From Oopsacas minuta (taxonomy: Eukaryota > Animalia > Porifera), in the NCBI GenBank assembly GCA_024704765.1, contig JAKMXF010000066.1:372001-436000 (forward strand): DNA of 64,000 nt, given 5' to 3'. Positions 23,963-62,834 of the stretch are shown here, piece after piece (positions within the stretch are counted from its first letter, which is position 1; each line of letters opens with the position of its first letter). A program made the position numbers and the translations under genes. The notes below the pieces were generated by a model, which was not told the DNA's origin, did no database searches, and saw only the letters and a program-made list of their open reading frames with translations.

Positions 23963-25591
23963 TCAATTTGCCAAGTTCTTCACTATTACTATATACTTTC
24001 TCATTGAATATTCTATCCATGATGATCCAAGCTCAAGTCTAGATTGCAATCCAGGATTCTTTGAATCAAATTCCCTCAAATATTCTAAATTATATTCAAA
24101 CATTTTATTATACTTGTTTGTGTCAACATCCCATCCTTTAAATGTAGATTTCATTTTGAAGTAATGTGGATATACCAGGTGAAGATAGTAGAGAATCAGG
24201 AGAGTTGATATGAAATTCTGAATATTTGAGTACATTTTAGTACCCAAAGATTTGGCTCCTTTATCGATCAATTCTTGATTTACGAGTTCTATAATTGAAA
24301 AGTCTTTTGTGGAAATTGCGAAATGTAAATCTTGTAATTTGAAGTAGTTTCTGTCATCTTTAAGCTTGATTAATTCCGTTAGTAATTCTTTCAAGGTTAT
24401 ACTCTTCTTTCTTAATACAGAGATTATTTCTTGTAAATCTGTCTGGTCGGTCTTGGAAGTTATTTCTAGATATTTCTTTCCCTTTTTAACATCTTTCTTA
24501 ACTGCTTCCCCACCCCAAAATATGTGTTCTACTTCTGACTTTTTCATACCGCGTCCGTTCCTTGCGCTAGTAAAAGTGGTTAACTCTTTACCGTTGATGG
24601 ATTCTGAAATATTAATGTCTAATGATAAACCATTAGTAACTGTGAGTTCGGGAAATTTAGGACTATAACTTGGAGATCTATGGCTATAGCTCGATGATAT
24701 AGGAGTATAGCTTGGCCTGCTTGGAGATGTAGGAGTATAGCTTGGAGAAGTAGGACTATAGCTTGGAAATCTTGGAGAAGTAGGACTATAGCTTGGAAAT
24801 CTTGGAGAAGTAGGACTATAGCTTGGAGAAGTAGGACTATAGCTTGGAGATGTAGGACTATAACTTGGAGAAGTAGGACTATAGCTTGGAGATGTAGGAG
24901 TATAACTTGGAGAAGTAGGAGTATAACTTGGAGAAGTAGGACTATAGCTTGGAGATGTAGGACTATAGCTTGGAGATGTAGGACTATAGCTTGGAGATGT
25001 AGGAGTATAACTTGGAGATGTAGGAGTATAACTTGGAGAAGTAGGAGTATAACTTGGAGAAGTAGGACTATAGCTTGGAGATGTAGGAGTATAACTTGGA
25101 GAAGTAGGAGTATAACTTGGAGAAGTAGGACTATAGCTTGGAGATGTAGGAGTATAACTTGGAGATGTAGGAGTATAACTTGGAGAAGTAGGAGTATAAC
25201 TTGGAGATGTAGGAGTATAACTTGGAGAAGTAGGAGTATAACTTGGAGATGTAGGAGTATAACTTGGAGATGTAGGAGTATAGCTTGGAGAAGTAGGACT
25301 ATAGCTTGGAGATGTAGGAGTATAACTTGGAGAAGTAGGACTATAGCTTGGAGATGTAGGAGTATAACATAGAGAAGTAGGACGATAGCTTGGAGATCTT
25401 GGGCTATAGCATGGGGAAGTAAGACATTGATCAAAGGAGGAAAATAGATAGCTTTTATGTAAAGCAAGTTGCTGCTCATATTCTTCAACATTCACATCTT
25501 CATCTCCTCCTAATCTTTCGTTATTATTCACGGTTACATCCACTTCTGATATTAAAGAGTCTACATCGTAATTTCGTGGTGTTTCTCCTCT
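23963..25591 (-). CDS. PARP4: PARP4 alternative last exon E: Pol II CTD-like heptads + divergent MVP-binding domain
   Basis: Acceptor TATTTTATTCTAG ends at 25592; the exon opens in phase 0 ([17 protein letters not shown]). C-terminus KGAKSLG...[11 protein letters not shown]...[14 protein letters not shown] matches the PARP4 C-terminal domain. Confidence 0.8.
24646..25408 (-). repeat. Coding 21-bp tandem repeat: about 35 Y(S/T)PTSPS heptads including degenerate flanks
   Basis: Directly readable in the translation; about 27 consecutive perfect [14 protein letters not shown] units. Confidence 0.95.
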
Positions 25592-25820: not shown

Positions 25821-28319
25821 TCATGATGAGTAAGAAATTCGTCTTTCAGCATACTGCATCCAAGAGGTAGCAAGATCAAGTCTGGAAGAGAGGGAAGGAT
25901 TATGTTTATTGAAGGTACGTAGAAAGGAGAGAGCCTTATCTCCAGCTGGTTTCCATCTAGGAGGTATGATGGTCCAGGAGATGAAGGAGGGAGACATCTC
26001 GAAGCTCTTAGGATAGACAGTGTGTAGGAACATGAGTAGTAGCAGTGTAGGTATGAATTGTAGTAGCTTTTTGTATACTGATACTCCTAGTGACTTTACT
26101 CCACTCTCTTCTATCTCTGTTTCTATCTGTTCTGGAGACATAAGTAGAGAGGAATGTATTATACTCAGATTTGATATCTCCCAACTTCCTTCTTCACTCT
26201 GTAGAGAGAATACTTCTTCACAGAATTCATTCATGTCTGGTACTAATACGATCTGTTCAGTTTCCGAAGACTTTGGTTCTATGTCATCATATAGATCTTC
26301 ACAAAATTCATCCATCATTTTCTCACGTTCTTCGACAGTAAATAGACCTCCAATAGGTGATGATGAGCCAAAACATTTTCTATGTACGATAGACGGACCA
26401 CTGTAATAATCATCATCATCATCGTATCCGCATATGTCTTCAAGAAGCTCATAGGAGCCATAATTGGCCCCCTCTTCATATAAATCATCTAGCAAACCCA
26501 TTTCTATTTGAGGAGCGGGAGAAAGTGTAGGGAATATCTCATCTTCTTGCTTTGTGTAATGCAAAATAGCTTCCATTTCTGGAGCTGCAGGTGCTTGTGG
26601 GAGTGAGGGTAGGGGAATAATCTCTTTTTGTTTCTCTTCAGCTCTTGCATAAGACGACACATCTCCTTTAGCTACACCAAGACTTTTCAATTTATTTTTG
26701 AGTCGAGGCAATTTAGCTGTTTTGGTTTCTGACTTATCACTTCGATATTTTAGACTGGCATTTATTGATGAGACCGTTTGTATAGCTCCTTCATCTGCCA
26801 CGTTGCATTTGTCATCTCCTAAATTCTTTACCAAACTAAGGCTTGAACATGTATATGGTTCAGCTAGTAGTAAATCCAATTCCATTAGAGGGGCTGAACG
26901 AGCTTGTGGAGCCGTGGGTAGGGAAAGAATCTCCTCTTGCTTTCCAGCTCTTTCAAGATCAGATTTGTATACATCCTTTTTTCTAGCCAAAACATTCTTT
27001 TTTGTAAATTGAGATGCTGATGAGATCATTTGTAGACTTATTTCATCTGCCTCGTCCAATTTGTTTTCTTCTAATGCCTTTAAAATTGCTCCTTCAACTC
27101 CCTCCTCGTTATCAGGATAAATCCAGTCTTCAGAACTACCACGTGTTCCTTTAGAACTGTACGGCACAGCCTCGGAAATCATTATCTCAATTTCCCTCTC
27201 ATCCAATGATTCCAATCTATTAAGCATAGCAGGTGCAGCTGCAGAAACAGGAGGAGAACCATTAATATCTTCAATGAGGGAATCGTCCACTTCATTTCTT
27301 GGTGCATAGTCTGATCCTGATCCATTAATTTCACCAATGAGAGACTCATCCATTCCATATGAACCTGCAGACTGTCTCCTCATGATGGGTTTGTATCCAC
27401 CAACATCATCGAATAAATCATATCCCATTTCATTATCTGATTCGGCTGTTGCATCATAGTCGGATAACTGTGTCGTATCCTCTAAGGAATGAATGCATGC
27501 ATATATTTCACGTTTAGGTTGTATAATTGTACCTACAGAACCCGTATTGAAACGTCCCGAGTAATCTCCGCCCCATCCTCCTCCGTCTAAATCTTTAAAT
27601 AATGGTCCTTGTGAAACTGGCATATCATATGTGAGACATTTTCTCAACATGGTTTCATCATTATATTCATTTAGAGGTGATTCTATAAAGGCAGGATCTA
27701 TTGGTTCAGCTAGGGAACTCTCGGAGGAGGAGGAAGGTATCATTGCACACATTCCACTAACAAAATATTCTGATGATGATTTCGTTCTAGTTACTACTTC
27801 TTTAGTTATAGGTTGTCTAACTGTAGGTTCAAGAGGGTTCTTGAGTGTTAGGATTCCTCTCTTGCTCATAGCTTCATCTCCTACGTATTTGTCCTTCTGT
27901 CCCATACCTACCATAACTCCCATGTGTCTAGGTCTACCTACAACAGGAGGGAACAGAGCTCTAGGTGTATCGTCTCCAGAGAAACCAGCTCCTATCTTCC
28001 ATCCACCTATATCTATAACGATAGGACAAGTCTCATCGTCTGAAGAGTCTGGAGAGGAACAAGATTGATGAGTGGAGAGGAACTGATTGAGTATAACTGA
28101 TTGTAAGGGTGTTATGGGGAGAGAAGTGGTGGAGAGTTGTTGATTAAGTTGATTGATTTGTGAGAGAGTATTGTCAGCATCAGTTGATAGATCTACCTTG
28201 ACTAGTGAAGAATTAGTTTGATATATTAGTTCAGCAGCTTGCATATACAGATGTCGTTGTATGTAATCTTGTATTGAGGATAGAGTCAGTTCCAACCTCA
28301 AAGGATTCCAGGGATACAC
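25821..28319 (-). CDS. PARP4: PARP4 alternative last exon D: actin fragment, ubiquitin-like and P-stalk-like motifs, degenerate SNARE, MVP-binding domain
   Basis: Acceptor TTTTCCTTCAG ends at 28320; phase 0 (VYPWNP...); no upstream in-frame ATG. Ends [10 protein letters not shown]...GVKSLG...[13 protein letters not shown]. Confidence 0.85.
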
Positions 28320-28756
28320 CTGAAGGAAAACCTTTTAATATGTGTGAACTTATAATTAATACTACGTAATGTTATTTGTACTAAATTTTTATGAAACAGC
28401 TGCAGTTCTCCCTTAAATATACGTAAATGGATGCTAATTTCATTAATTGGGCGCAAAGCCATGTGATCTGTACAGTTGGTAGCTAATTGATCTTACAACA
28501 TTTTCCATTCATTATTTTCACTGTTACCCGTGTTAGGAGGGATTGACTGGATAAATAAACGGAAAGTATTTAGAAAACAAGTCAACAGTATTACTTCTAT
28601 ATTTATATTCCACACACATACACAGTTACACACCAAGTCTTACTCCTCACTAATTGAGGATCTTTCATAGTCCAAATTTCTAATAAAGGCATGCTATCTA
28701 TATCTAATATTCTAAAGATCGAGTTTGTTCATACTAAAAGGAAACTATAGAGAGAT

Positions 28757-31069
28757 TTAAATGTTAGGAACTTTGATTCGTTTTTCAGCATACTGCATCC
28801 AAGAGGTAGCAAGATCAAGTCTGGAAGAGAGGGAAGGATTCTGTTTATTGAAGGTACGTAGAAAGGAGAGAGCCTTATCTCCAGCTGGTTTCCATCTAGG
28901 AGGTATGATGGTCCAGGAGATGAAGGAGGGAGACATCTCGAAGCTCTTAGGATAGACAGTGTGTAGGAACATGAATAGTATCAATGTAGGTATGAATTGT
29001 AGTAGCTTTTTGTATACTGATACTCCTAGTGACTTTACTCCACTCTCTTCTATCTCTGTTTCTATTTGTTCTGGAGACATAAGTAGAAAGGAATGTATTA
29101 TACTCAGATTTGATATCTCCCAACTTCCTTCTTCACTCTGTAGGGAGAATATTTCTTCACTTATTGTGTCTATATCCGGTGGTTCTACCAATTCTTGCTC
29201 TGATTTATATTCATCTAGATCATTTGAACTTGTTTTTGAGGAACTTCTCCGATGATATCTAACCTGTTCATCGTGACGTGTATCACAAAATCTAGCACTG
29301 CCCGATTCGAAATGAATCGATTCCTTTTTCTGATTCTTGCTTCCCTTATCCGTTCTTCTCATCATGTTTATTGAAGACCTAGATATTCTATTTTGATTCT
29401 CTTGCATTTGCGGCATTGCGTTATCAAATAATTGAGAACAGCCAGCTGATCTAATATCACTACTACTGGGTGGATCTAGTCCTAAGTAGGAGTGACTATC
29501 CTTCTCAAAAAGCTGTATTTTTCCACTTTGAGGGTGAGACTCTTCCTTAATGTTTGAATCAGAATAATTTTTTTGGGGAATGATCATTGAACCATGTAAC
29601 TTTGTTGAAACAGCTTGAGGAGGGGGAAGAGGAGCAAGAGCAGATTTAGAATATGGCTTGCTTGCACTTTGAACAGCTCCAGGGGGAGGAGCAATAGAAG
29701 GAGGTCCATGCACCTTCCCTCTGGGAGCAGCTCTAGTAGCCACACGAAGGGGAGGGGGAGCAATGGAAAGCGATCCATGTACCTTGCCCCCTCTTTTTAC
29801 AGGAGGAGGAGGAGGAGCATATTTCGATAGTAAAATACCAGAACTATCTAATTCATTGTCCATATCAGATATTTCAATTTTTTTTAGTAGCATTCCTTTT
29901 CGAATACTTGGTAACAATTTATCTCTAGAGCCTAATGGCGCTGTCGCCATTGATGTTGGTTCTGGAGGGATGTAAATCTTAGCTGATCCATGTTTGCCAG
30001 TTTTCAGAACTTGATGCGAAGAAGGTGACTTAGTACTATCAGTCATCATTTTGTCAAGAAGTCTTTGAGTTTCTTCATCTAGATCATCTTGTTTTGGCTC
30101 TTCGTAACTCTTAAATCCTAAACTAGTAGAATATTCAGTTTTCAATTCAGAAGAATAAGCGGATGCATCTTCATCAGAATCATCTCCAAACAAACCTCCA
30201 AAATCTTCGGGAGATGATAACTGAAATTTAGAAGTATTTTCTTTAGGAATTTCGCTGATGCTCAATGCATGCTTAGTAGAAGGTTTACTCGTATATTCAC
30301 ACTCACCATAATCAGCATCACCATCATCAAATAACCCAAATACCATAGAATCATAGTCATCCTCAGATTCATCATCTTTGGTATATGTAACAGCTGAAGT
30401 AGGAGGTGTAACAACAGCTGTAGTAGGTCTTATTATTGTCTTTTGCTTTCTCCTTTTATGTGGTATATGTGGTATTATAGGTTTGTCTGAATATTCAAAA
30501 TCGTCGAATAGATCAAACCCCATATCATCATCATCATCATCAGATCCTCCACCACCCCAACCATAGGATATCTGTGCCTTTGAATCTATAGCTTTACCAC
30601 GTACTGGACTTGGAGCTCTTTTAGTTATAGGTTGTCTAACTGTAGACTCAAAAGGTTTCTTGATTGTTAGGATTCCTCTCTTGCTCATAGCTTCATCTCC
30701 TACGTATTTGTCCTTCTGTCCCATACCTACCATAACTCCCATGTATCTAGGTCTACCTACAACAGGAGGGAACAGAGCTCTAGGTGCATCGTCTCCAGAG
30801 AAACCAGCTCCTATCTTCCATCCGCCTATATCTATAACGATAGGACATGTCTCATCATCTGTAGTGATTTGTAATTGTTTTTTGAACTGATTAATCTGTG
30901 AGAGATACTCACAAGCTTCTACAGAGAGTTGTGTTGAGTTAGAATCTAGAGCTAGTGTAGAGTTAGTTTGTTGTATAAGATTAGCAGCTTGTATGTGCAG
31001 ATGTTGTTCTATGTTAGCTTTCACTGAGGATAGAGTCAGTTCCAATCTCAACAAATTCCAGGGCTCCAC
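28757..31069 (-). CDS. PARP4: PARP4 alternative last exon C: actin fragment, P-stalk-like motifs, WH2/poly-Pro, eS30-like repeats, MVP-binding domain
   Basis: Acceptor ATCTCCTTCAG ends at 31070; phase 0 (VEPWNL...); same C-terminal domain as A, B and D. Confidence 0.85.
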
Positions 31070-31416
31070 CTGAAGGAGATACCACCTGTAACAATTTAGT
31101 TTTGAGGTATTTATCATATACATTTAATGATTTACAAAACATTACATTTTATTTTACTGATATACTTGCAGAACTACAGTTACCCCCAACTATGATAAAT
31201 GACGAATGTGTTCTAATTGTGGCTTAATTATTTCTGATATTTATACCGTATTTATATAGAGAGATGTTTAATCTAGGAAAACTGAACATACATAAATATA
31301 TACAACAACTTATTGTTTTTCATCTTGCGTAAATATGCTAAACTAGAACAAACAAATAACTAAATGAGTCATTTAGGATTTCTGGGTAGAAAAGATATGG
31401 TTAATAACTCAATGAA

Positions 31417-33729
31417 TCAAATTGCAACTTTGATTCGTTTTTCAGCATACTGCATCCAAGAAGTAGCAAGATCAAGTCTGGAAGAGAGAGAAGGATTCTG
31501 TTTATTGAAGGTACGTAGAAAGGAGAGAGCCTTATCTCCAGCTGGTTTCCATCTAGGAGGTATGATGGTCCAGGAGATGAAGGAGGGAGACATCTCGAAG
31601 CTCTTAGGATAGACAGTGTGTAGGAACATGAATAGTATCAATGTAGGTATGAATTGTAGTAGCTTTTTGTATACTGATACTCCTAGTGACTTTACTCCAC
31701 TCTCTTCTATCTCTGTTTCTATTTGTTCTGGAGACATAAGTAGAAAGGAATGTATTATACTCAGATTTGATATCTCCCAACTTCCTTCTTCACTCTGTAG
31801 GAAGAATATTTCTTCACTTATCTTGTCTATATCCGGTGGTTCTACCAATTCTAGCTCTGATTTATAATCATCTAGATCCAGAGACTCATCTGAGCTGCTA
31901 TCGCTATCTGGCTCTTCTATCCCATCATCTATCATGTTAAGCAGATGTCCAACTTTAAACAACTTACTTTGATTCTGTAACTGATCAGCACGTTCCTCTA
32001 ATTGATCCAGCATACAACCTCTTTTGAGAACAGAATGCAAATTTAACCTAGTTTGAGCCTGAACTTTGAATAGTTCATCTTCCATATCTTTCTTTTCTGA
32101 AACTTCCATTCTTGCCTTGCGTTTTCGCTCTTTGGGTTTGGGTGCTGAGGATCCACCTGCAGCATGACCTTCCATGCTATCGAACCCTTGAAATAGTTGT
32201 GCGGCCTGCATCTGGGGTGGAGGAGAAGAGCTTTTCTGAAGTAGATTCAAAGAACGACGTTGGTTGGTGACTTGTAACTTTAATGCTGTCAATCCACCAG
32301 GAGGAGAAAGACGAGCCTTACTGGCACCTGGTGGACGCGGTAGGGAGAATTTAGTTCGAGATGTCTCAGATAATTTGGGGGAATGCCTATATTCAGAACT
32401 CAACTCCGAAATAGTGTCTACTATTCGTTCTCTGGATTCTATTGAATCGAGACACACAGTCTGTTTTTTCATTTCCTTATCTACTGATTGAACTTCCTTT
32501 TTCAGAGACTTTGTAACTCCACCACCAATACTTCTAAACGGTTCCATAAACGTAAAGCCACTGAAATCTATTTCGTTCTCTTTTGATTCCTCCATGGTAA
32601 TTTCCCTAACGAGATTGCCGGGAACAACTCTCTCCCTCTCCCTCTCCCTCTCCCTCTCCCTTTCCCTCCCCCTATCCCTACGAACAGCATTAGAACTTCC
32701 AAAAGAACTTAATTCATCTAATAATATTTCATCATCTTCAGGTAAAGGTATACTAATTGCTTTAGTAAATTCTTCGTCAAAATTGCGTAACAATTCTTTA
32801 TCAATTGTTACTTCGGGAGGAAGTAGAGCTGGCATTTCTAACTCTTGTTGTTTTTGTGTGGTAGCTGGGGTAATATACGTTGAATACAAGTCATGCTTTG
32901 AAGCAAGGAAATCTTTATAAGCCTTTGCTCCATCTCCACCATCTGCATCGAAAAAGGCTGACCTATCTTCATCCGATCCCCCTCCTCCATCTGCTTCTTC
33001 TATGAATGCGAATTGTCCTTGTAAATCTGGCATATTTGTGAGACATTTTCTCAACATGATTTCATCATTATATTCTTTTAGAGGTGATTCTATAAATGCA
33101 GGATCTATTGGTTCAGCTGGGAAACTCTCGGAGGAGGAGGAGGAAGGTATCATTGCACACATTCCACCTCCAAAATATTCTGATGATGGTTTCATTGTAG
33201 TTACTACTTCTTTAGTTATAGGTTGTCTAACTGTAGGTTCAAGAGGGTTCTTGAGTGTTAGGATTCCTCTCTTACTCATAGCTTCATCTCCTACGTATTT
33301 GTCTTTCTGTCCCATACCTACCATAACTCCCATGTGTCTAGGTCTACCTACAACAGGAGGGAACAGAACTCTAGGTGCATCGTCTCCAGAGAAACCAGCT
33401 CCTATCTTCCATCCACCTATATCTATAACGATAGGACAAGTCTCATCGTCTGAAGAGTCTGGAGAGGAACAAGATTGATGAGTGGAGAGGAACTGATTAA
33501 GTATAACTGATTGTAAGGGTGTTATGGGGAGAGAAGTGGTAGAGAGTTGTTGATTAAGTTGATTGATTTGTGAGAGAGTATTGTCAGCATTAGTTGATAG
33601 ATCTACCTTGACTAGTGAAGAGTTAGTTTGATATATTAGTTCAGCAGCTTGCATATACAGATGTCGTTGTATGTAATCTTGTATTGAGGATAGAGTCAGT
33701 TCCAACCTCAAAGGATTCCAGGGGTACAC
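31417..33729 (-). CDS. PARP4: PARP4 alternative last exon B: actin fragment, AGC-kinase-tail motifs, R-SNARE motif, MVP-binding domain
   Basis: Acceptor ATCTCCTTCAG ends at 33730; phase 0 (VYPWNP...); same C-terminal domain. Confidence 0.85.
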
Positions 33730-33998
33730 CTGAAGGAGATACCACCTGTAACTATTTGGTTTATATTGAGCATTGTGATCATCAAGAATATTAATTAATC
33801 TCCAATTTATTGAGCTAATTTGTGCACGCACACATAATCACTTCATGTATATTAAGTTTGCTAACTTTTTAACAATTTCTGATAAATATACATCCTAAGA
33901 AGTTTATTTATCAACAAAAATGTCTCTAATGAAACAGAAATTTAGCTAAATATATGTGCATGCATTCTAATTCTGATTTCTACTCATGCATTCAAGCA

Positions 33999-36437
33999 TC
34001 ATTGCTTGATGTTTGCATCGATTCGTTTTTCAGCATACTGCATCCAAGAGGTAGCAAGATCAAGTCTGGAAGAGAGGGAAGGATTCTGTTTATTGAAGGT
34101 ACGTAGAAAGGAGAGAGGCTTATCTCCAGCTGGTTTCCATCTAGGAGGTATGATGGTCCAGGAGATGAAGGAGGGAGACATCTCGAAGCTCTTAGGATAG
34201 ACAGTATGTAGGAACATGAGTAGTAGCAGTGTAGGTATGAATTGTAGTAGCTTTTTGTATACTGATACTCCTAGTGACTTTACTCCACTCTCTTCTATCT
34301 CTGTTTCTATCTGTTCTGGAGACATAAGTAGAAAGGAATGTATTATACTCAGATTTGATATCTCCCAACTTCCTTCTTCACTCTGTAGGGAGAATACTTC
34401 TTCACAGAATTCGTTCATGTCTGGTACTAATACGATCTGTTCAGTTTCCGAAGACTTTGGTTCTGAGTCTTCAAATAGATCTTCACTAAAACCACCACAA
34501 GTTGCAATTTGTCTGCTCTCAACATTCAAGTTTATTGGCATATTTGTGATGTCAACTGTTCCTTCGTCGGCTTCTTCATAACCACCTTCAAAGAATTTAG
34601 AGCTATAGTATTCACTTGGTACAGTTTTACCCATTTTCCTTTCATAAATGTTTTCAATATATCCTTGCTGTAGGTCCATATATGATTGCTGGTTTTGTGG
34701 GGCTAGTAGCTGCTGCTGCTGTTCATCTAGTGGTGGTCGATATCGGTGTGGTAATTTTACTTGACTTGGAGGTGGAATTGCTTGCGTTAATACTGGAAAT
34801 TGTGGTTGCGACGAAATCGAACGTCTACTTAACAGTTGGGGCATAGGTTTTGGTTGTGCTCCTGAAAAAGTACAAGCAAACGGATCTAAAGCTTTTTGTA
34901 AATTAAATCTTGCAGCTGTTGCTGTATTTCTACGGAAGTCAGCTGTTTTATCTGTTTCTGGTATAGGTGCTCTAGAGGAATTATATTGTGTTTCACTAGG
35001 AGGCGATATTTCAGGAGGTGAAGCCCCAAACAATGATATTTGAGGAGCTCCTGGAGCAGATCTATCTGCGCTCCTTAATCGACTCCCAAAATGAATTTTT
35101 CGTAATTCGCTTGCTGGAGCTGCTGCAGACTTACTTTGGTAATTGGAAAATAAAGATTGTTCATAGTGGGGTATATCTTGTGATTCTCCTTTATTGGCCT
35201 TTCCATATGTTCCATATGCACCACGGCCACGGCCACGGACTCTTGTTTTGGAAAACTGTGGATGTAAATCTAATTGAGGTTGCTGTGATTGTGGACTAGA
35301 TTGAATTAGACCTTGTATGTCACTTGATGGAGCTGAAAATGTTTCTAACTCCATTCCACTTGATTGGGTTGGCTTTAAATTATATGTCATTCCACTTGAT
35401 AATTCCATTCCACCTATAGTGGGCTCGGTTAGCTCTGCCATAAAACTCATTGAACCTGAACGAGCTTGAAAGGGTTGACTTTGATTACTTGCTCCTGATT
35501 CCCTTGGAAATTTAGTGGACCGACGACTCATTCCACTCATTGGTTCAAATAACACTTCACTTGATTGAGCTTGCTCTGATTCAATTAATTTTTCAAAAGA
35601 TTGATCTTCAAAATGTTCACTTTGATTACTTGGTGCTACATCCATACATAGAAACGGACTGGCTTGATGACTCATTGCAGTGTAAGATCCTACTTCCATT
35701 TTTCTTAATAATGGCATACTTTTCTTCTGGAACACTTTAGGTACGGATGCTAGACACTCCGATGCATCTACTAATGTAGTCAATTCCTCGTCTCTAATAA
35801 GTAGATCCAATACTTTGTCATCAACTCCTGTTGGCACTTCTACAGAAAGATTTTCCATTTGTTTTTTACGAAATTTCTTTTTTTTACCTTCCTCCTGGCT
35901 CTTTTCTCTACTGTCTCTCCTATTTAATGGTTTTGCTTCTTCTTCCTCTCTTCTTCTCTTTTCTTCTGTCCCTAAAAGCATGCTACTTCCTCCAGCTACT
36001 AGCTCATCTCTTCCATGATGGATTTCCTCTTCCTTTTCATTAACATCCAATTTCTCATTTTCCATCTCACTTGTTTTAACGCTTATAAAATCCCTTAATA
36101 ACTGTAGCTTCATCGTTTCACTTTTGTAAGTATCTTCAGACATACAATCTAGTTTAGATATTCTCTCATCAAATAACTTGATCGCCTCATTTACATCAGT
36201 TGGTAGACCTTGATTTGAATACCATGAAGGGATATCCCTACCATCCACTTCACTTGAGGATGAACTACTTGATTCTAGCAGTACGTAATCTGAATCATCG
36301 CTAGCTAACGAATCTCTCTCCCCTCTGAGTTTCATCTGTTCATCGTAATCATGCTCTTTAGTAGTTTCCAATAACTCATATAACTTTTTCATTATATCTT
36401 TTCTAGCTGTAGTTGTAATGGGAAGATCTTGACTGAC
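33999..36437 (-). CDS. PARP4: PARP4 proximal last exon A: 14-3-3 fragment, R-SNARE motif, low-complexity linker, MVP-binding domain
   Basis: Acceptor TTTCCTACAG ends at 36438; phase 0 (VSQDLP...). Minus-strand AATAAA at 33908-33903, about 90 nt past the stop. Confidence 0.88.
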   Translation of the reverse strand, partial: VSQDLPITTTARKDIMKKLYELLETTKEHDYDEQMKLRGERDSLASDDSDYVLLESSSSSSSEVDGRDIPSWYSNQGLPTDVNEAIKLFDERISKLDCMSEDTYKSETMKLQLLRDFISVKTSEMENEKLDVNEKEEEIHHGRDELVAGGSSMLLGTEEKRRREEEEAKPLNRRDSREKSQEEGKKKKFRKKQMENLSVEVPTGVDDKVLDLLIRDEELTTLVDASECLASVPKVFQKKSMPLLRKMEVGSYTAMSHQASPFLCMDVAPSNQSEHFEDQSFEKLIESEQAQSSEVLFEPMSGMSRRSTKFPRESGASNQSQPFQARSGSMSFMAELTEPTIGGMELSSGMTYNLKPTQSSGMELETFSAPSSDIQGLIQSSPQSQQPQLDLHPQFSKTRVRGRGRGAYGTYGKANKGESQDIPHYEQSLFSNYQSKSAAAPASELRKIHFGSRLRSADRSAPGAPQISLFGASPPEISPPSETQYNSSRAPIPETDKTADFRRNTATAARFNLQKALDPFACTFSGAQPKPMPQLLSRRSISSQPQFPVLTQAIPPPSQVKLPHRYRPPLDEQQQQLLAPQNQQSYMDLQQGYIENIYERKMGKTVPSEYYSSKFFEGGYEEADEGTVDITNMPINLNVESRQIATCGGFSEDLFEDSEPKSSETEQIVLVPDMNEFCEEVFSLQSEEGSWEISNLSIIHSFLLMSPEQIETEIEESGVKSLGVSVYKKLLQFIPTLLLLMFLHTVYPKSFEMSPSFISWTIIPPRWKPAGDKPLSFLRTFNKQNPSLSSRLDLATSWMQYAEKRIDANIKQ

Positions 36438-37164
36438 CTGTAGGAAAGTTTTTGAGGATAGTTTGATAATCGAAAATCCTTCAATTATCAATATAAACTT
36501 TAGCGTTTACCCAGCTTTATATCATTAGTCATTTTATTATACCATTACTGAGTTACTGCTAACTTTTCATTTTTCGGGACATTATGCAATTATGTAGATA
36601 CAACAGCAATAATTCCTTTTATGGAAGTTTAGGTTCCTTGTAGAATATAACACACAATATATTAGAGCTATTTACCGTATAAATTCATTAATAAATAGGT
36701 TTATATTTGATAAAGTAAAATGAGAATTTGGCTAAGTTACTTCGCGTTATATAATTACAGTAAATAAATCAACAAGAATACTGTTTACAGCAATATGTAC
36801 GTATTCAAATGAATTTCGAGATTGTTTAGTATAATCGAATCCCTCAGAGTATAACCAAACATACATTTAAGTTAATGAGAAATAATGAATCCAAATAATT
36901 AAAATAAAATAATAATTACATCAGAATATATGTTGTTTTGTATCATGGCTTGTAGCAAATGCTTCAATTCAATCTTGTTGTTATGAATTATATTGTTTTA
37001 TGCAATTATCGTCTTAAATATACTGATATTCAAAAATAATATACATTCATTGAATTTCAAATAATATTCACCTTCTGTGCTTTCTAGTATTCCAATATTA
37101 GCGAGAAACAACAAATAAATAAATAAACAATAGCGTACAATAGTGTATAATGCTTGTGATAAAC

Positions 37165-37166
<2 letters not shown>

Positions 37167-37225
<59 letters not shown>
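37167..37225. repeat. (TAA)~20 microsatellite, read (ATT)n on the PARP4 strand
   Basis: Starts a few nt inside the intron after the last common PARP4 exon. Confidence 0.95.
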
Positions 37226-37231
37226 CCTGAC

Positions 37232-38679
37232 CTGCTCCTTTGCAATTTCCAATGCTCTCTCCAGACTAGCAGTTGTCTTTGAACTCATAGCCTCCTCATA
37301 AGCTTCCCTTAAGATAGCTTCTCCACTGGTTGCTATCTCTTCCTCCGCTCCTTGTTCCCATCCCATGTAATCGAGAATATCTACATCCTCATCTATAACC
37401 AGCTCCTCAATGCTTGGACCAGTCTCCTTACTGAATACTTCTCCCTTCTCGCGCTTTTCAACAGCTACGAAACTTGTGTACTAAATTGAATGGTATTTTG
37501 TTAATTCGAACTGTCACTGTAAAATAATGTTCGAATTATCGAACGGAAGTGATAGTATAATATCTTCACGGGAAAAATCAAATTTTTCGAAGTTTTTCAT
37601 AATCCTAAGTTTACCTGAGTGACTATACAATACTTCTTAGACATTTCTATAACTTTGGGTTTCCTCTCTCTTCGTTTCAATTCATCCTGAATAGGATCTC
37701 CCTCTAAGTGTCCCTCTAGTGAGTCTCTTATCACAGCCTTAGCTGTCAGTCTCCCTAACGTAATTCCCTTTGTAACAGAAAGATCTGAACAGTACACGCT
37801 AGTCTCCAACTGCTTCCCTCCAAGAGTGGCTCTTAGTATAGCTTGTCTGCATGATGATGCAAAACCGTACACTACTAATCTGTTTCCGTGGAAAACCGGT
37901 CCCAACTGTAGAGGCGCCCATTCAGGCGGCTCTAGCTTCACGACTCCGTCCTATTAATGGAATTTAAGGGTTAATTCCTTTGCCCAAGATATAAGCAAAC
38001 TCCCGATATATCGAACACATATATTTAATTATCGAGTTACAGCAGTCCCTTAAGCTTCGATATAACGGATGTTGACTGTAAATAGATTGAAGTGACTGTA
38101 TTTATCTGGTTTATATCAATTGAATGCATTACTTTTACAGCTAACTCAACTTACGTCAAATTGTTTCCATTCCACTTCTATTCCTCCAAGTGCTGGCTGG
38201 AACGCCCTGTTAATCTGCCTATGTACCTTTCCTTCCCATTTAGATTTAGCTGTTGTATCAAAGCTCTCTGAACATCCAAGACCTGTCCTACTCATTCTGT
38301 TCATCAAGTGCTTGTTGAGAGCTGATCCTACTCCCAGAGTAAATACTCTACTATGTCTACTGATGTTTTGTATCTTGTTAAGGACTGTATGTTCCTGTTG
38401 ATAGCAATACGTATTATAATAGCTTTTGATAAAATCGAAAATATAAAGGCTCCGAATTCATATAATAACATTACATATCATATGCTGTATTCTAAAACTC
38501 TTCTTCTTAACGAACACTACTCACGGGGGTAGTATGGAAATTCTTTTTGTTCCAAAGGCGTGATACAGAAAAGGAAGGGGTCAAAACTCAAAATTTCAGG
38601 AATTTACGTTACGTAGCGTTCCAACGGCCCCAACTCAGTTTTAATCATTAATTGGTATTATTATTATTATTATTATTAT

Positions 38680-38720
<41 letters not shown>

Positions 38721-41700
38721 CATTCAATACTAACCTGTGTAACGTGCCCATCAGAGATAATGAATACACTCCTGTTGGGTATGAGTGATCCACTACTAGA
38801 ATCTCTGTACAACAGCTCTACAGCATGGAACAACTTCCATAGGTTTGTACTACCCATATTAGGTCTGGCTAGCTGCACCCAGTTGCTAGCCTGTTTAACT
38901 GTATCTTTAGATTGGTTCTGTGAGTATGGAAATAATTCCTCCCAACCACTTCCGAACTTTATTATGTTGAAACGAGAATTGTTTGGGAGATGATATAATG
39001 CTAAGAGGAGAACCTGTAGCGAGAATATTATTAGAAATAATTTTAACTTTGTACTGAAAACATCAGGAAATTACAAATGCGATCGAATTGGAAAATAGAT
39101 TTAGAATTCTTATATCCAGAAAAGCTGACAAAGCACTAGAGACTACCAACAATTTCACCCGTGGGCCCCCCCTATACCAATATTAGCACATTCTGTCCTC
39201 TCATAGACTGAAATACAAATATTGAGATGCTTGGAGTAGACCGCTGCACTAACTGCCTGTACACATTATCCCTTTACTACTCACCTTCTTTGCAGTAGAG
39301 AAAGCTGTATCCTCCTGCATAGAGTGAGAACAGTCAAGTAGGAATAATATCTCAGCGTAAGGAGACTCCTCAACTTCAAATTCGGGATAGAATGTTAGCA
39401 TACATGCTTCTGTTCCATCCTCTGCTTCTTCTACCCACATTCTTGGTACATGAGCATGAGAGAGAACTATTTGAAGATGGAACCCATCTTTCCCAATATT
39501 CTCACCTTTAATCATCTCTAGAACAGCTCTTGTTTGTGTTTTCTTTATCTTCATACGATGACTGGTACAATTGATCCCTTGTATGTCAAATGGCATTTCT
39601 ACTTTCAACTAATAAGAGAAATAAATTGTGGTTAAGAATTATACTTTTTAACGAAAATTTACATTATTTCAGCGGTTTCAACCTTTTTAACCCTTGGGAA
39701 CCAAGCGGGCACAAGGACCCAGATTGGGAACAACTGTATTATTTAACAGTTTTCAATTACTATAGTAACCTGTAGTGAAGTTTTCCCTGCATGTTGATCT
39801 CTAATCTTTACAGTCCCTACTTCAGACTGTGTGAGTGGATCTAGAGCTGTTCCTGTGTGCCAGGGAGCTACACTCCCGGGTAGATTAAACAGTACACTGT
39901 CTCCTTCCATCATTAGCTCTGCTACATATGTTATCTTGATTAACACGTTAGCTCCTGGAGGGAGGTTGCCAACACTCACTGTAAATACATCTGGCACCTA
40001 TAAGTATATTGTATAAGAACTTTTTCCCATTGTTTTTGCCAAAAATTGTTGCTGCTACCACGTAAAATCGGTTGAAAATGTAAAATATCATATTTCACCT
40101 ATTATTCGCCTAATAGCAAGTTTTTTTCAGGATTCGAGTCCCATTTTGTATCGGAAATAATTCTCTAGTAGCAAATTCGCTTACAAGCAAGAAAATTGTT
40201 CCCAAAATACGACTTGTTAATATTCAAATTTTTTCATTGAAAACACCCCATATTCGAACTTTTCCCTTCAAGTTTATCTTTCAGCTTACCTCTTCGTCCA
40301 TGAGATAAGCTCCGTGTCCTTCTTTTATAGCTTCTCTGTACTCCCTGTGTGCTTTTTCCTTCTCCTTAACTTCTCCCACGATATGCTTACCGTTAATGAA
40401 AGCTTCGAATCCACACACACAAGCATTTTCATCCAGTGGAAACACATACTTAGCTTCTATTGCTTTCAAACCCTCGTTTTCATACTCTTGCATTACAATA
40501 ACTTCACTTGACAGATCCATTAATTTGACTCGTATATGAACAGATTTTAGAGGTACACCTGCTCCTCCGGTGTCTCCCCCCACTACCTGCAGACCTGGTA
40601 CTATCTTATCCATTGGGTTAGACACACCCTGTACATCTCCTATCTCCACATGACCTGATTCACTCTCTAATTCTTTTGATTCATAATTCTCTTCGTTTTC
40701 ACTCTCAGATCTACGAATGTAGTTAATTAGTCATATAATATAATATCTAGTTCAGTGGTTCCCAACCTGTGTTCACCCGATGACCCCCCCCCTATACCAA
40801 GTTTAACACATTCTGTGGACCCCTGCTGTCGTTCGTGGGAGCACCAAGAGGTTCATGGACCTCAGGTTGGGACCAGCTGATTTAGTGATTTTCAACTTAC
40901 TCTGTGTCTGTATTTTTGATAATCGGCCCATCGCTTGGAAGTTGAAACTCCACTGCGAATCTCAGCACCTGTTGCTTAGTACTATACACGACATATTCAT
41001 TCTCAGAGAACTTACTTCCTGGTTCTTCTCTCCTACCTACCCCTCTCACACTGTCATAACCATCAGGTGCCTTATCCAACTCTCTATCTTCCTCCAAATA
41101 ATCCTTACATTTTCCTATGTTAACTTCATGTATTAGCATCATTCTAGTGTTTGTTGACTGACCAGCTGATGAGAACTTAACACTATGACTTGTGTTTGAA
41201 GCGAAGTAAATACCGGACCCCAATTTTCCGTAATCGGACCTCTCTCCACCGTGTTGTGAGACAATAACTTTCGGCATTAATAATCCTCTCGACAGGATTC
41301 CTAACATGTTTTGATAGGAACTTGAATGGAATAGCAATTTAGTATTAGATTCTTCTCCGATATTTATTTGTTCTGATGGTCTATCGATTCTATAAATGTT
41401 ACGAATTGTTATAGCCTTAGGATCACTAGCCTCTGATAATACCATCTCATTGATTAGATTGAATTCATCAGATTTGGAAGGTAACTTTTCAATAGAACAT
41501 CCCAGTGTAGCGTATTTAGCCCAATAGTTGAGCTTATCATCCCATTTGGTACTTTCTCCAATTGATACCACGTCACGGATTAGCTGGCAAAAGTCTTGTT
41601 TCAGTGATACCTGTTTGATTAATTATAATATAGTTAGAATATTGGATGCAGAATTATTTCCTCAGACCATAGTGTTTACTGAACCAAATTTTGCAATAGT

Positions 41701-42999
41701 TGAATGTGGCCCAACCACTTTGTACGTCCATATCTCGAAAAATACAAGTCAGTTTTATATGCTCAAAAATGCAAAAATGTAGGTCAGAGTCTCCTCTACC
41801 CGAAAAATTGTGTCTCGGGACAATTTCTCCTACAATTATTAAACTATACGGGGGGTTAAAACTAGATTTTGTAGTAGTTTGTAACTAACTTGTTTGAGAT
41901 CAGTGATAGGATCTTTAGCTTTATGTTTGAATGGTATAAGAGTGTAGAATTCGTTAGAAAGTTCTTCTTTACTAACTTCAGATGTCTTAGTACCTTGTAG
42001 CTGATCTCTTATCAATCTTAGAATAGCTTCAGCACGAGTTACCTGATCCAACCCTACTGACTTAACAGGCACACTTAGCAGTCCGTCTCCTCCGTGTCCT
42101 AATGGTGTTAGAGCTTCTCTCCAGATCCCATCTACAAAATCTTTGATATCTCTGCCACCAATCTCGCTACTACCCCACTCAGCTTTGAGGCCTACACTAG
42201 CCTGTACACACGAATCTATCAGATGTTGTTTTAGCTTATTAGAACCTATCTTAAGGGAAATAAACTGTTTGTGTGAATAACCACTTGCTGTAAACTGCTT
42301 TACAAAATGCCCATACACATATTCTGCCTCTCCCACTAACTCCAGGTAGCGTACCTCTTTCAATGTCTTGTCCTGATCACCAGACAGCTGTCCAGTGTGT
42401 GTAAACACGCGGAAATTATGAGTAATTTCGTCTGTATTATCTGTTGATACCTGTAGCTCAACACACGCGAAACTCACGAGCTTACTTTTATAATCAGTTT
42501 TTTTCAACAGAGCATACTTTCCTATATCATATGCAGTTTCTATGAATTTTGGTTCTTTCCCTTTGTTCTGATCAATCGACCATACATACACAGGGAGTTG
42601 ATTGACATTGACAGAAACTTGTTTCGGTTTGCTCGACCTTTTGACTGTCAATTGTTTGTCAATTCCTGATGCGACGATCTTACCAGAACCGAATGATAAT
42701 GAAGCAGTACTACCAGTCAGTAGGTACTTATCAGTGTCAAGAAGTTTCCCTTCTTCTATGCAAGCATCCAGGTAACCAATACCTACAACAGGAATGCCCT
42801 TTTTCAACGCGGTTTTTGCTTTATAGGAGTCCTGCGCTTTATCGGGATTGTTCATAAGCATGAACTTAGTCTGAGCAGTTATTAGGAAGGATATTATCCC
42901 GCCATTATCTGTAATCTTCTTTTTGAGAAGAGTTTTTTCTTTGAACGAAACACTGAAGTCAAGTTCAAGCACAAAATGACAATGTTCAAATATTCTCAT
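37232..42999 (-). CDS. PARP4: Vault PARP common core (BRCT, PARP regulatory/catalytic, VIT, vWA); exons 41890..42999, 40901..41610, 40290..40710, 39770..39997, 39285..39608, 38735..39013, 38155..38394, 37615..37950, 37232..37480 (1299 codons)
   Basis: BRCT (MRIFEHCHFVL...GGIISF); DFCQLIRDVV; catalytic H-Y-E residues (LLFHSS, GSGIYFA, ENEYVVY); VIT (IEAKYVFPLD...CGFEAFINGKHIVGEVKEKE, PDVFTVSVGNLPP); vWA (FLLDCSHSM, IISDGH); YTSFVAVEKR...EDVDILDYMGW. Every splice checked is GT-AG and frame-preserving. Confidence 0.93.
38656..38720. repeat. Compound (TAT)n(AGT)n microsatellite in PARP4 intron 6
   Basis: Directly visible; about 8 + 13 units close to the donor site. Confidence 0.9.
40753..40879. 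mobile_element. hAT-like MITE in PARP4 intron 2
   Basis: TIRs CAGTGGTTCCCAACCT / AGGTTGGGACCAGCTG; flanks ATCTAGTT / ATTTAGTG (6/8 match, decayed 8-bp TSD). Related copies near 39155-39210 and 51405-51560. Confidence 0.6.
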
Positions 43000-43582
43000 T
43001 TCTAGGAGAAAAAGTGTATTCAAATAGACCAAACTTCTTATATAAGAAAGTGTATGCAAATCCTTGCTGCATTAAGCCTAAATGGTTCTGTATAAATCCT
43101 GTTAATGTTCAATATAGTAACTCTAGCTGGCTCGTTATAGCAATCTTAATGTGTATTATTTTAAGCTACACACATAATATTTATGACCTAAGACGGATTG
43201 TAAATTGTAATCTTTATGAAAGGAGAGATTTATTATTGTAACAACCTTGCTTATTTAGGGACATATGTTAGATCACGTGTTTTGTTTAGCATTAATCAAA
43301 TAGCATTGCATGTAGTATATTACCTCATATTTGGGACGTACATAATTAAACGCTCATTATCTGTTACAAGACTTTTACATATTTATGGCAGTGTTGATAT
43401 TGCAAAATTCTTTCACCACATGGGATTTCTGTAGACACATTCATTCATTCAATGGGATTTTATTTAAATATTCCTAATATATTAATTATCAAATTTCTTC
43501 TTTTTTTGAAAAAAATTTGCAAATGTTGTTTAGCATTAATGAAATAATTGAGTTACTGTAACTACAATAGCAAACAGCTGTA

Positions 43583-45062: not shown

Positions 45063-55673
<10,611 letters not shown>

Positions 55674-59767: not shown

Positions 59768-60557
59768 GATTAGGTTAGACAATTACCATATAGTGAATTG
59801 AGTCAATTGAATGGCTAGCTATTGCCTATTGGTTCCTTTTAAAGCAATTTAATCATTCGTATTAATTTCATTATCTTATCTCCATGGCAATTGAATAGAG
59901 AATACTTGGGTGTAAATACACATGAGACATTAGATAGCAATGTAGGACCAAAATTACGAATTAAATCAACATCTGCAATCTATTTAGAATTTCATATTCC
60001 GTACCTGTATAGTTATGACCGTGAGATCTTTAATCCATTTTCCTTCCTAATTAATTATTTACAACTTCATTTAGTGACGATTTTCTACTTTACAGTTAAG
60101 CTTGCAGCGAATAAATGCTAAGATTATGTATGTATTTTCAGTAGAGCCCAGAATTTGTTAAATATTTTATTTACTCTATTTTCTAAATCGTAATTTTAAG
60201 TGCTAACATGGTAAATTTCAATGTTCTACGTTTGTGAACAAAAATTGATTAACAATTATTCTTTATGTTGTTTCTTATATACATAGTTAACAGATGGATA
60301 AGTTGTGTATATGTGTTCAATATATTATCTGAATATGATATGTTTTCGCCATAGCATTCTATAGTTTTCACATCGAACTAATGCCAAATCACGAGGATTT
60401 ATAGACACAGCCTTTAAAGGCTAAATTAGGTATCTATGCGAGTTGAGACATAGATATCAAATTTAGCTTGTATGCACTGCCAAGACATTCTTATAAGTGG
60501 ATTAAAGATCACTTCCTATAGAATAGAACCATACCAAAAAATTTGAAATTCTCAAGT

Positions 60558-61016
60558 ATGGATCCTAACTACCTACTTCTTCCTAATGAACATCAAGATT
60601 GTATGCTTATACCACACTTAGAATTTGTAAATAGGGCATTTGACTGGTCTCATAGGGATAAATCACCTGGTCGCTTTTTTGGGAGATTTCAATGTGACTG
60701 TGGTAATAAATGGGTAAGCGGTTGGACATGGTCAGGTAGAGGCCAGAAATGTCATATGTGTACTGATGAATATGGATGGAACGAAGTAGAATACACAAAG
60801 CCTTATGATGTAGAACCTCGAATGAGGCGTCCAATACGCCCACGATCACCCCCAAGATCCCCTCAACCAAGATCCCCTCAACCAAGATGGCCTCATGACT
60901 ATGAAAATTGCGAATATTGTGCTGAGCTATCTGGTTTCATCCGAAGAATACCGACACAGTCCGAGTGTGAGAAAGTGAGGTCTGGTGATCCATATTCACG
61001 TGCTTATATAGTTTAA
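60558..61016 (+). CDS. Stand-alone 3CxxC zinc-finger protein (ZCCHC24/ZAR1/RTP-type domain), copy 1
   Basis: FFGRFQCDCGNKWVSGWTW..RGQKCHMC...HDYENCEYC; first ATG at 60558. Confidence 0.85.
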   Translation: MDPNYLLLPNEHQDCMLIPHLEFVNRAFDWSHRDKSPGRFFGRFQCDCGNKWVSGWTWSGRGQKCHMCTDEYGWNEVEYTKPYDVEPRMRRPIRPRSPPRSPQPRSPQPRWPHDYENCEYCAELSGFIRRIPTQSECEKVRSGDPYSRAYIV

Positions 61017-61372: not shown

Positions 61373-61858
61373 ATGGACGATGAATCCACTGAAATGAGTG
61401 ATAGCTCAGAAGATCATGATCATGATTATTGTTTATTCGTGCCATACATGGAAATACACAATGTAGAGTTCGACTGGTGGCATAAAGACCGAGATCCATG
61501 TCGATTTTTCGGGCGATTTCAATGTGATGAATGTCCAAATAAATGGACAAGCGCGTGGACCTGGCTAGGAAGAGGTCATAAATGTAGAGAATGTGTTTAT
61601 GCGTTTGGTTGGCATTCAGTCGAATACACTTTGCCATATGAAGTAGAACCTCGGATGAGGAATCCACCTCCTCGTCTGTATGGACCAATTGGACCACGAA
61701 GAAATCAAAATCATTTAGACTATAAGAATTGTGAGTTTTGTGCTGAAATATGCGGCTCCACGACAAAAATACCGAAAGACAGAAAATGCAACTATGTGAA
61801 TCCTGGCAACCCGTTCAGTAGGGCTTATCGACAACGAAGACGTAAGCATTACTCATAA
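61373..61858 (+). CDS. Stand-alone 3CxxC zinc-finger protein, copy 2
   Basis: FFGRFQCDECPNKWTSAWTWLGRGHKCREC...DYKNCEFC. Confidence 0.85.
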   Translation: MDDESTEMSDSSEDHDHDYCLFVPYMEIHNVEFDWWHKDRDPCRFFGRFQCDECPNKWTSAWTWLGRGHKCRECVYAFGWHSVEYTLPYEVEPRMRNPPPRLYGPIGPRRNQNHLDYKNCEFCAEICGSTTKIPKDRKCNYVNPGNPFSRAYRQRRRKHYS

Positions 61859-62396: not shown

Positions 62397-62834
62397 ATGG
62401 CTCAGAGATACAATTCATTCACCCTTCATGCCCATTGCAAACATGTACCACACTTGAATGCTCAGGGAGAAACTTTCGATTGGTCTCATAAGCCGAAGCC
62501 ACCAGGTAGATTTTTCGGGAGATTTAAATGCGATACCTGCACACATGAGTGGGCTAGTGCTTGGACCTGGCTAGGTAGAGGTCAGAAGTGCAGAAATTGT
62601 ACTGATACTTTTGGTTGGCAGGCGGTAGCGTACACCATCCCCTACGAGGTAGACCCGCTAATGAGACGACCTCCCGGACCACGAGTTCATCGCAAAAAGC
62701 CAGATCACTACTACCAAAACTGTGAGTACTGTGCTGAACTGTGTGGCTCTCCTAGGAGGAAACCTTCTCACCATGCGTGTGGGAAAGGGAGATCTGGAGA
62801 TGTAGAGTTCCCAAGACCTTTCGGACGTAATTAG
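62397..62834 (+). CDS. Stand-alone 3CxxC zinc-finger protein, copy 3
   Basis: FFGRFKCDTCTHEWASAWTWLGRGQKCRNC...HYYQNCEYC; (CAA)n run just upstream of the ATG. Confidence 0.85.
   Translation: MAQRYNSFTLHAHCKHVPHLNAQGETFDWSHKPKPPGRFFGRFKCDTCTHEWASAWTWLGRGQKCRNCTDTFGWQAVAYTIPYEVDPLMRRPPGPRVHRKKPDHYYQNCEYCAELCGSPRRKPSHHACGKGRSGDVEFPRPFGRN

Follow-up and report, generated by a model that had tools for sequence, protein, structure and literature searches.

A conserved actin-derived module in the tandem tail exons of a glass-sponge vault PARP, and its possible role as a tethered decoy

The stretch of DNA analysed in the present study, hereafter the window, comprises 64,000 nucleotides of the Oopsacas minuta genome (assembly GCA_024704765.1, contig JAKMXF010000066.1, positions 372,001–436,000) and carries on its minus strand a vault PARP (PARP4) gene, three tail exons of which contain a 69-residue module derived from actin. 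The assembly holds 61,460,524 bases in 365 contigs and the window has approximately 36% G+C; the published description of this genome gives 365 scaffolds, ~61 Mb and 36% G+C, and mentions neither PARP nor vaults (PMC10280926). The PARP4 body exons lie at 37597–43059 (−) and encode BRCT, PARP regulatory, PARP catalytic and VIT domains and the vWA region, the gene having been searched with Pfam exon by exon and not as a joined spliced model (BRCT, E 6e-9; PARP, E 4.7e-29; VIT, E 2.1e-27). The presumed vWA exons gave no match when searched singly in this way, and a vWA domain is present in the orthologous protein of the glass sponge Vazella pourtalesii described below. From these domain matches, the host gene of the three actin modules is predicted to be a vault PARP of the BRCT–PARP–VIT–vWA type. 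The last constant exon ends at 37232–37366 (−), with a donor site (cag|gtcagg) after 37232, and the Vazella protein P0121 has an identical peptide ahead of its tail. An extended (ATT)n microsatellite occupies 37150–37225 (−), a few bases past this donor.

Beyond this point lie five tandem minus-strand ORFs (open reading frames) of ~2.4 kb, which we term exons A (33999–36491), B (31417–33831), C (28757–31123), D (25821–28319) and E (23963–25543). All five have a common C-terminal block with 97–99% DNA identity, and the block of exon E is the more divergent. Exons B, C and D each open at a polypyrimidine–CAG acceptor directly before V-[Y/E]-P-W-N and have the same layout, in which a helical leader is followed by the actin module, a short non-actin linker, 260–560 variable low-complexity residues and the C-terminal block. 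The leader of exon D (28041–28319) starts at the acceptor ccttcag|GTG and that of exon B (33451–33729) at ttcag|GTGTACCCC, which matches the Vazella P0121 junction Q|V-x-P-W-N-P; exon C has a short-type leader (30860–31069), also starting at a splice acceptor, of a type shared with tails of a related genome (L013). The linker after the module occupies 27798–27833 in exon D, where V, R and P are invariant in the alignment, and the equivalent linkers are at 30617–30652 (exon C) and 33208–33243 (exon B). Within the C-terminal block we place the MVP (major vault protein)-interaction domain, i.e. the putative vault anchor, at 25848–26213 (exon D), 28787–29152 (exon C) and 31444–31809 (exon B), all of these features being on the minus strand. 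This assignment was made via homologous tails, 78% identical in the block, which have precomputed matches to PF26156 (PARP4_MVP-ID) at E≤1e-5. The major vault protein itself is encoded in the genome (MVP_shoulder, E 1.5e-51 and 1.2e-38). Exon D reads into its own TGA, and weak candidate donors are present in exons B and C (aaa|gtt; window positions 28757–28790 and 31417–31450). In Vazella, the ends of P0121 and P0122 differ from that of the genomic P0127 right past A-E-K-R-I, which suggests a donor at this motif and a short downstream terminal exon.

The actin modules lie on the minus strand at 27834–28040 (exon D), 30653–30859 (exon C) and 33244–33450 (exon B), and our translations agree with the 69-residue peptides that an earlier reading of the same DNA (the original prediction) had given for these three stretches. 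When the module was compared with PDB actins, query residues 1–69 aligned with actin 2–70 gaplessly (exon D copy, E 1.7e-27, 98 bits). In addition, Pfam Actin (PF00022) was found in all three ORFs at E values of ~1e-10, exceeding the gathering cut-off (1.1e-10, 3.5e-10 and 1.5e-10 for exons D, C and B respectively), and covered only profile positions 2–66/67 of 410. The exon C copy has 96–97% nucleotide identity with the B and D copies. The reference actin quoted in the original prediction is that of the genome's canonical actins (L001–L004), and the module is identical with L001 at 50 of 69 positions. It spans the N-terminal β-hairpin of subdomain 1 and the whole of subdomain 2, which includes the DNase-I-binding loop (D-loop), and its ends match what we take to be structural ends, the start being actin's acidic N-terminus and the stop P70, the end of subdomain 2. 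Residues past P70 in the tails bear no relation to actin, so that R177 and T148, named previously as sites of ADP-ribosylating toxins, do indeed fall outside the fragment. A genome-wide search of O. minuta found the module at the PARP4 tail locus only.

To what extent the module is still an actin can be judged from what it has lost. A complete actin/HSP70-type ATPase fold needs ~375 residues, both phosphate loops and the adenosine motif; 69 residues are present, and the phosphate-1 loop signature (D11-N12-G13-S14-G15 … K18) is absent from them. In the 22 modules from six genomes that are introduced below, N12 is always leucine or isoleucine, S14 is glycine or alanine and G15 is tryptophan or cysteine, and K18 is glycine in O. 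minuta; the degraded ATP loop that had been described from the window copies is thus general, with N12, S14 and G15 retained in none. At positions 12, 14, 15, 16, 17, 52, 59 and 69 no module has the residue of actin, and A22S, S33P and I34V are fixed throughout. The D-loop had been called nearly intact, which holds for G42 (21 of 22 modules) and for V43, M44, M47 and K50 (22 of 22), but not for Q41, which varies between Q, M, L, R and H.

These features are not confined to O. minuta. A word search with exon D returned 27 tail-like proteins, and an exhaustive search of 1.84 billion representatives gave 27 proteins with E≤1e-30, all of them tail-like, the next hits being ordinary actins at ~100 bits. 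Five more assemblies (L011–L015, from five different ENA analyses) carry arrays of four to seven tails each, downstream of PARP4 body exons, which with the window brings the total to 23 actin modules in six genomes, always positioned after the leader. Of the 23 copies, 22 have an open reading frame; the remaining one (L012, from 21189), whose C-terminal end is disrupted, was excluded from the codon statistics, leaving 22 modules. One of the tail-like proteins from the exon D word search falls into a 90% cluster together with Trinity-derived proteins of Vazella pourtalesii, and among the members is P0121, a Trinity-derived protein of 1912 residues in which BRCT, PARP_reg, PARP, VIT and VWA are followed in one frame by leader, Actin (Pfam, residues 1390–1461) and MVP-interaction domain, the C-terminal block standing at the protein end. 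The donor and acceptors of the window agree with its junction (…KEQ | V-E-P-W-N-P…). P0121 thus shows directly, for a relative, that vault PARP is translated with the actin piece in it, and for O. minuta the support consists of the matching splice signals.

Two proteins from divergent, G+C-richer genomes, P0146 and P0147, contain a piece of actin 5–70 in which the phosphate loop is altered, the D-loop is intact and the ending is the derived N69-P70-L; the M59 change is seen in P0146 and not in P0147, where residue 59 is asparagine. A VIT exon lies 3.6 kb upstream of P0146 on the same strand, so the cassette may predate the six sampled genomes, whereas P0147 is without such a context. BLASTP of these two proteins and their neighbours against the window MVP-interaction domain gave no significant match, and the upstream VIT exon is what would tie P0146, and P0146 alone, to a gene of the vault-PARP type. 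Both P0001 (on an ENA contig of 64116 bases) and P0146 (L017:10001–11455) have an extra partial copy, actin ~44–70, beside the full module. The presence of these extra copies in two lineages hints that this sub-segment may be the functional core. A different arrangement is seen in P0148 (on an ENA contig of 21079 bases), which is not a PARP4 tail and consists of degenerate repeats of actin ~10–62, five to six in tandem, with D-N-G-S-G kept.

Within a genome, the module copies are near-identical, with synonymous divergence (dS) of 0–0.07. When exon C was compared with exons B and D, the proportion of synonymous differences (pS) was 0.38–0.40 in the leader, 0.06–0.11 in the adjoining actin module and 0.02 in the MVP-interaction domain (the value against exon B), and the same step from leader to module is seen in L013. 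This pattern indicates that the actin and anchor modules have been homogenized within each genome by gene conversion. The three window copies are therefore not independent evidence, and the argument for selection rests on the comparison between genomes. Since the short-leader exon type occurs in both the window and L013, the exon paralogues must have arisen before the species did.

Selection was assessed by pairwise Nei–Gojobori estimates over 200 between-genome pairs, which were pooled, are phylogenetically non-independent and have a dS of ~0.9, i.e. near saturation. The ratio of non-synonymous to synonymous divergence (dN/dS) was 0.28 for residues 2–18, 0.003 for residues 19–25, 0.43 for residues 26–31 and 0.08 for residues 32–70, with a value of 0.065 for the D-loop (residues 39–51). 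Control regions of the same tails gave 0.38 (leader), 0.49 (post-module linker) and 0.23 (MVP-interaction block). These data show that the actin core is the most constrained part of the tail, exceeding even the vault anchor, and its constraint approaches that of the genome's canonical actin paralogues, for which dN over the corresponding residues is 0.02–0.04 at a dS of 1.1–2.0. Variable columns are likewise unevenly spread, comprising 15 of 17 positions in residues 2–18 and 18 of 52 in residues 19–70 (p=1.6e-4), and 33 positions are both invariant and identical with actin. In comparisons with the actin genes resident in this genome, dS has reached saturation (2.2 to undefined) and dN is 0.24–0.27, with the mismatches concentrated in residues 2–25 (11 of 24, compared with 8 of 45 elsewhere; Fisher p=0.022); divergence from actin is thus neither uniform nor neutral, and the original prediction, which uniform and neutral divergence would have refuted, withstands its own test in this respect. 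That proposal went on to suggest that selection preserves an exposed interaction surface. Selection has indeed kept ~50 near-contiguous residues, but because these include positions that are presumably buried in folded actin, it is the whole subdomain-2 sequence, and not a surface alone, that has been preserved.

Two other sources of such conservation were considered and excluded. Recurrent conversion from real actin genes does not account for it, because dS against actin is saturated and the derived states are common to all genomes, a combination that points instead to one old capture with no continuing gene conversion from actin genes. A constraint imposed by an antisense ORF (e.g. 27631–28068, plus strand) is at odds with its frame-specificity on the minus strand, where pS is 0.5–0.7 and the corresponding non-synonymous proportion 0.05.

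The same data bear on the notion that the module is a neutral relic or non-coding pseudo-exon, similar between copies only via recent duplication or conversion from actin genes. The near-identity of the copies within each genome, homogenized as they are by gene conversion, is what such a relic would show. However, between genomes the core has a dN/dS of 0.06–0.08 at the dS given above, its divergence from the resident actin genes is saturated with derived substitutions held in common, its frame is open in all but one copy, and it forms part of a full-length PARP4 transcript in Vazella. On these grounds we reject neutral decay and a pseudo-exon, which we regard as extremely improbable.

From a 17-sequence alignment of tails only, AlphaFold2 predicted three helices for the leader at a pLDDT (predicted local distance difference test) of 55–71, while the actin module had a pLDDT of ~40, no secondary structure and no contact with the leader. 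An autonomous mini-actin fold is thus unsupported by this prediction, although low confidence of this kind is weak evidence. Together with the size of the fragment (69 of ~375 residues) and the replaced phosphate loop, this bears out the earlier view that actin function is not what has been retained. It is also pertinent to whether the module has been co-opted as a structural element, which packs against the leader, another PARP4 domain or MVP and whose resemblance to actin is irrelevant. The constrained positions include hydrophobic ones that are core in actin, hydrophobic residues still alternate along 8–18, where G13 and V9 are invariant, and the position of the module, after the leader and before a conserved linker, is constant. 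Yet apart from the predicted lack of structure and of leader contact, 42–44 of the 52 positions in residues 19–70 are still the actin residue despite saturating synonymous divergence, which is beyond what packing needs, and tails without the module keep the same leader and MVP-interaction domain. We consider this explanation unlikely.

The sibling tails carry pieces of other proteins, namely Synaptobrevin, WH2, Rpb1-CTD, Ribosomal_60s and FG-nucleoporin. Exon E contains, at 24646–25408 (−), ~35 YSPTSPS heptads of the RNA polymerase II C-terminal domain (CTD; Pfam RNA_pol_Rpb1_R, E 3.7e-28), and exon B has a Synaptobrevin/R-SNARE-like stretch at 31954–32091 (−; Pfam E 2e-5) of which exon A has a weaker version (E 0.008); a Synaptobrevin-like stretch accompanies the actin module in the tails of other genomes too. 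In exon C, a WH2 actin-monomer-binding motif with proline-rich repeats on its flanks is found at 29864–29932 (−; Pfam E 3e-4, just under the cut-off), and WH2-like motifs occur in several homologous tails. Exons C and D, and P0022 on L012, have repeated acidic D/E-rich stretches ending M-G-F-x-L-F-D that resemble the C-terminal tail of the ribosomal P-stalk, and one homologous tail has a precomputed Ribosomal_60s match. In P0138 (L012:2443–5109), which is without an actin module, the same leader is followed by a 14-3-3-like piece and then by long G-L-F-G-Q repeats of the FG (phenylalanine–glycine) type with a faint Nucleoporin_FG match. Taken as a set, these pieces would fit a general bait logic.

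An endogenous adaptor is one possible account of the actin module, in which its partners are actin or actin-binding proteins of the sponge itself; for instance, the D-loop could enter the barbed-end groove of an actin monomer or filament, as happens within F-actin, and the module would tether vault PARP to the cytoskeleton or load vaults with actin-associated cargo. V43, M44, V45, M47 and K61–I64, which are invariant in all 22 modules, form what we take to be the longitudinal contact of F-actin, the WH2-type motifs of exon C and several homologous tails are actin-binding in type, and a layout of cargo followed by MVP-interaction domain is a known route of vault packaging. Set against this, CTD heptads, P-stalk tails, a SNARE motif and FG repeats, which make up the sibling modules, come from unrelated machines in different compartments and would be a strange choice of endogenous targets for a single cytoplasmic particle, and a decoy would be expected to show an identical pattern of selection. 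We rate such an adaptor as plausible but on the unlikely side.

The explanation that we favour, if tentatively and at somewhat less than even confidence, is that the actin module is a tethered decoy for foreign actin-directed factors. On this view, the three stretches are copies of one old cassette, which arose when the large tail exon of vault PARP acquired the opening 69 codons of an actin gene (residues 2–70) in an ancestor common to several glass sponges, and the captured piece, no longer an actin, may act as a flexible peptide bait that shows subdomain 2 and the D-loop while tethered between the ADP-ribosyltransferase and the vault-wall anchor. Its most likely client would be of foreign origin, a microbial or viral factor whose normal activity is to bind, cut or modify actin. 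As would be expected of a decoy, the module derives from a host protein whose original activity it has lost, and the mimicking face is held actin-like by selection at residues 19–25 and 32–70. A foreign client is favoured because the sibling tails carry pieces of other conserved hubs, because the second of the minor vault proteins, TEP1, is a STAND-type, TIR-like NADase, and because the equivalent mammalian exon (PARP4 exon 30), which is disordered and precedes the MVP-binding domain, is the sole PARP4 exon under recurrent positive selection and a proposed pathogen interface (Daugherty et al. 2014, PMC4038475). The sponge exon occupies the same site, being a large and mostly disordered exon between the vWA region and the MVP-binding domain, but whereas the mammalian exon is single, positively selected and without recognizable homology, that of the sponge is tandemly multiplied, carries pieces of host proteins and is under strong purifying selection. 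The C-terminus of PARP4 is anchored inside the vault (PMC12280208). With the bait placed between enzyme and anchor, a factor that bound it would be drawn to PARP4 and the vault, and one that cut the tail would set the enzyme free of its anchor.

Several considerations weigh against a decoy of this kind. Protealysin, the actin cross-linking (ACD) toxin and DNase I act on folded G-actin, and a disordered 69-mer may escape their recognition; within the D-loop itself, Q41 varies. Constraint on residues that are buried in actin is more in keeping with a unit that folds, or with an interface that is long and extended, than with a simple surface patch, and the tail is expected in the vault lumen, which may limit access for large effectors. 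Lastly, the evolutionary pattern is equally compatible with a foreign and an endogenous client.

No description of host-protein fragments in PARP4 tails was found in the full-text literature on PARP4 with sponge, decoy, vault or Hexactinellida, but partial parallels exist. Integrated decoys are reported from plant NLR (nucleotide-binding leucine-rich repeat) immune receptors, such as the WRKY domain in RRS1 and the HMA domains in RGA5/Pik-1; as there, a piece of a host protein is fused into a larger protein, its original role is lost, a recognizable face is selected and the gene or exon family is tandem and diversifying. Unlike the plant decoys, the sponge carrier is a vault-anchored ADP-ribosyltransferase, the fused piece is a non-folding fragment of 69 residues and diversity comes via tandem alternative exons. 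In the protease ‘tripwire’ of NLRP1 and CARD8, a disordered linker is said to mimic the target of a pathogen enzyme. There too the mimic stands between two functional parts that cleavage would separate, although it consists of short viral polyprotein cleavage sites, whereas ~50 contiguous host residues are kept in the sponge and cleavage here is hypothetical. Engineered vault cargo, in which a passenger is fused to PARP4 INT/MINT, has the same order of passenger and MVP-interaction domain, which puts the passenger inside the vault; the sponge arrangement is natural and its passenger is PARP4's own tail. Primate POTE-actin, which was also among the hits of the exon D word search, likewise joins an actin coding sequence to an unrelated protein, but has a complete actin with an intact nucleotide site, in contrast with residues 2–70 and a replaced phosphate loop.

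A more sweeping possibility, which we put forward as speculation and think rather improbable, is that the glass-sponge vault PARP is an effector trap as a whole, with its tandem tail exons supplying an assortment of integrated decoys, namely actin, R-SNARE, the ribosomal P-stalk tail, Pol II CTD and FG repeats, each held between an ADP-ribosyltransferase and the wall of the vault; the actin module would serve as a tripwire for actin-directed toxins or proteases.

Elsewhere in the window, an assembly gap (a run of N) at ~46600–47220 is flanked by a short tandem repeat that translates as Y-S-I-F-Y-I-L. On the plus strand, three paralogous intronless ORFs of 145–161 residues (60543–61016, 61373–61858 and 62397–62834) are cysteine-rich with the pattern F-D-W-x-H-K … G-R-F-x-C-D … W-T-W-x-G-R-G-x-K-C, and look like a small zinc-finger family.

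The functions of the vault and of PARP4 have long been unsettled, and a strongly conserved 69-residue peptide offers a direct handle for finding a natural ligand. The module is also a natural case of a fragment kept for its looks and not for its activity, with a decayed ATP site beside a D-loop region under near actin-level constraint. Either type of client, a foreign effector or the endogenous actin machinery, would reveal the purpose of the vault-PARP tail, and its identity would help to explain the fast evolution of the equivalent mammalian exon. If the effector trap were true, it would give the vault a concrete immune role and place the logic of integrated decoys in an early-branching animal.

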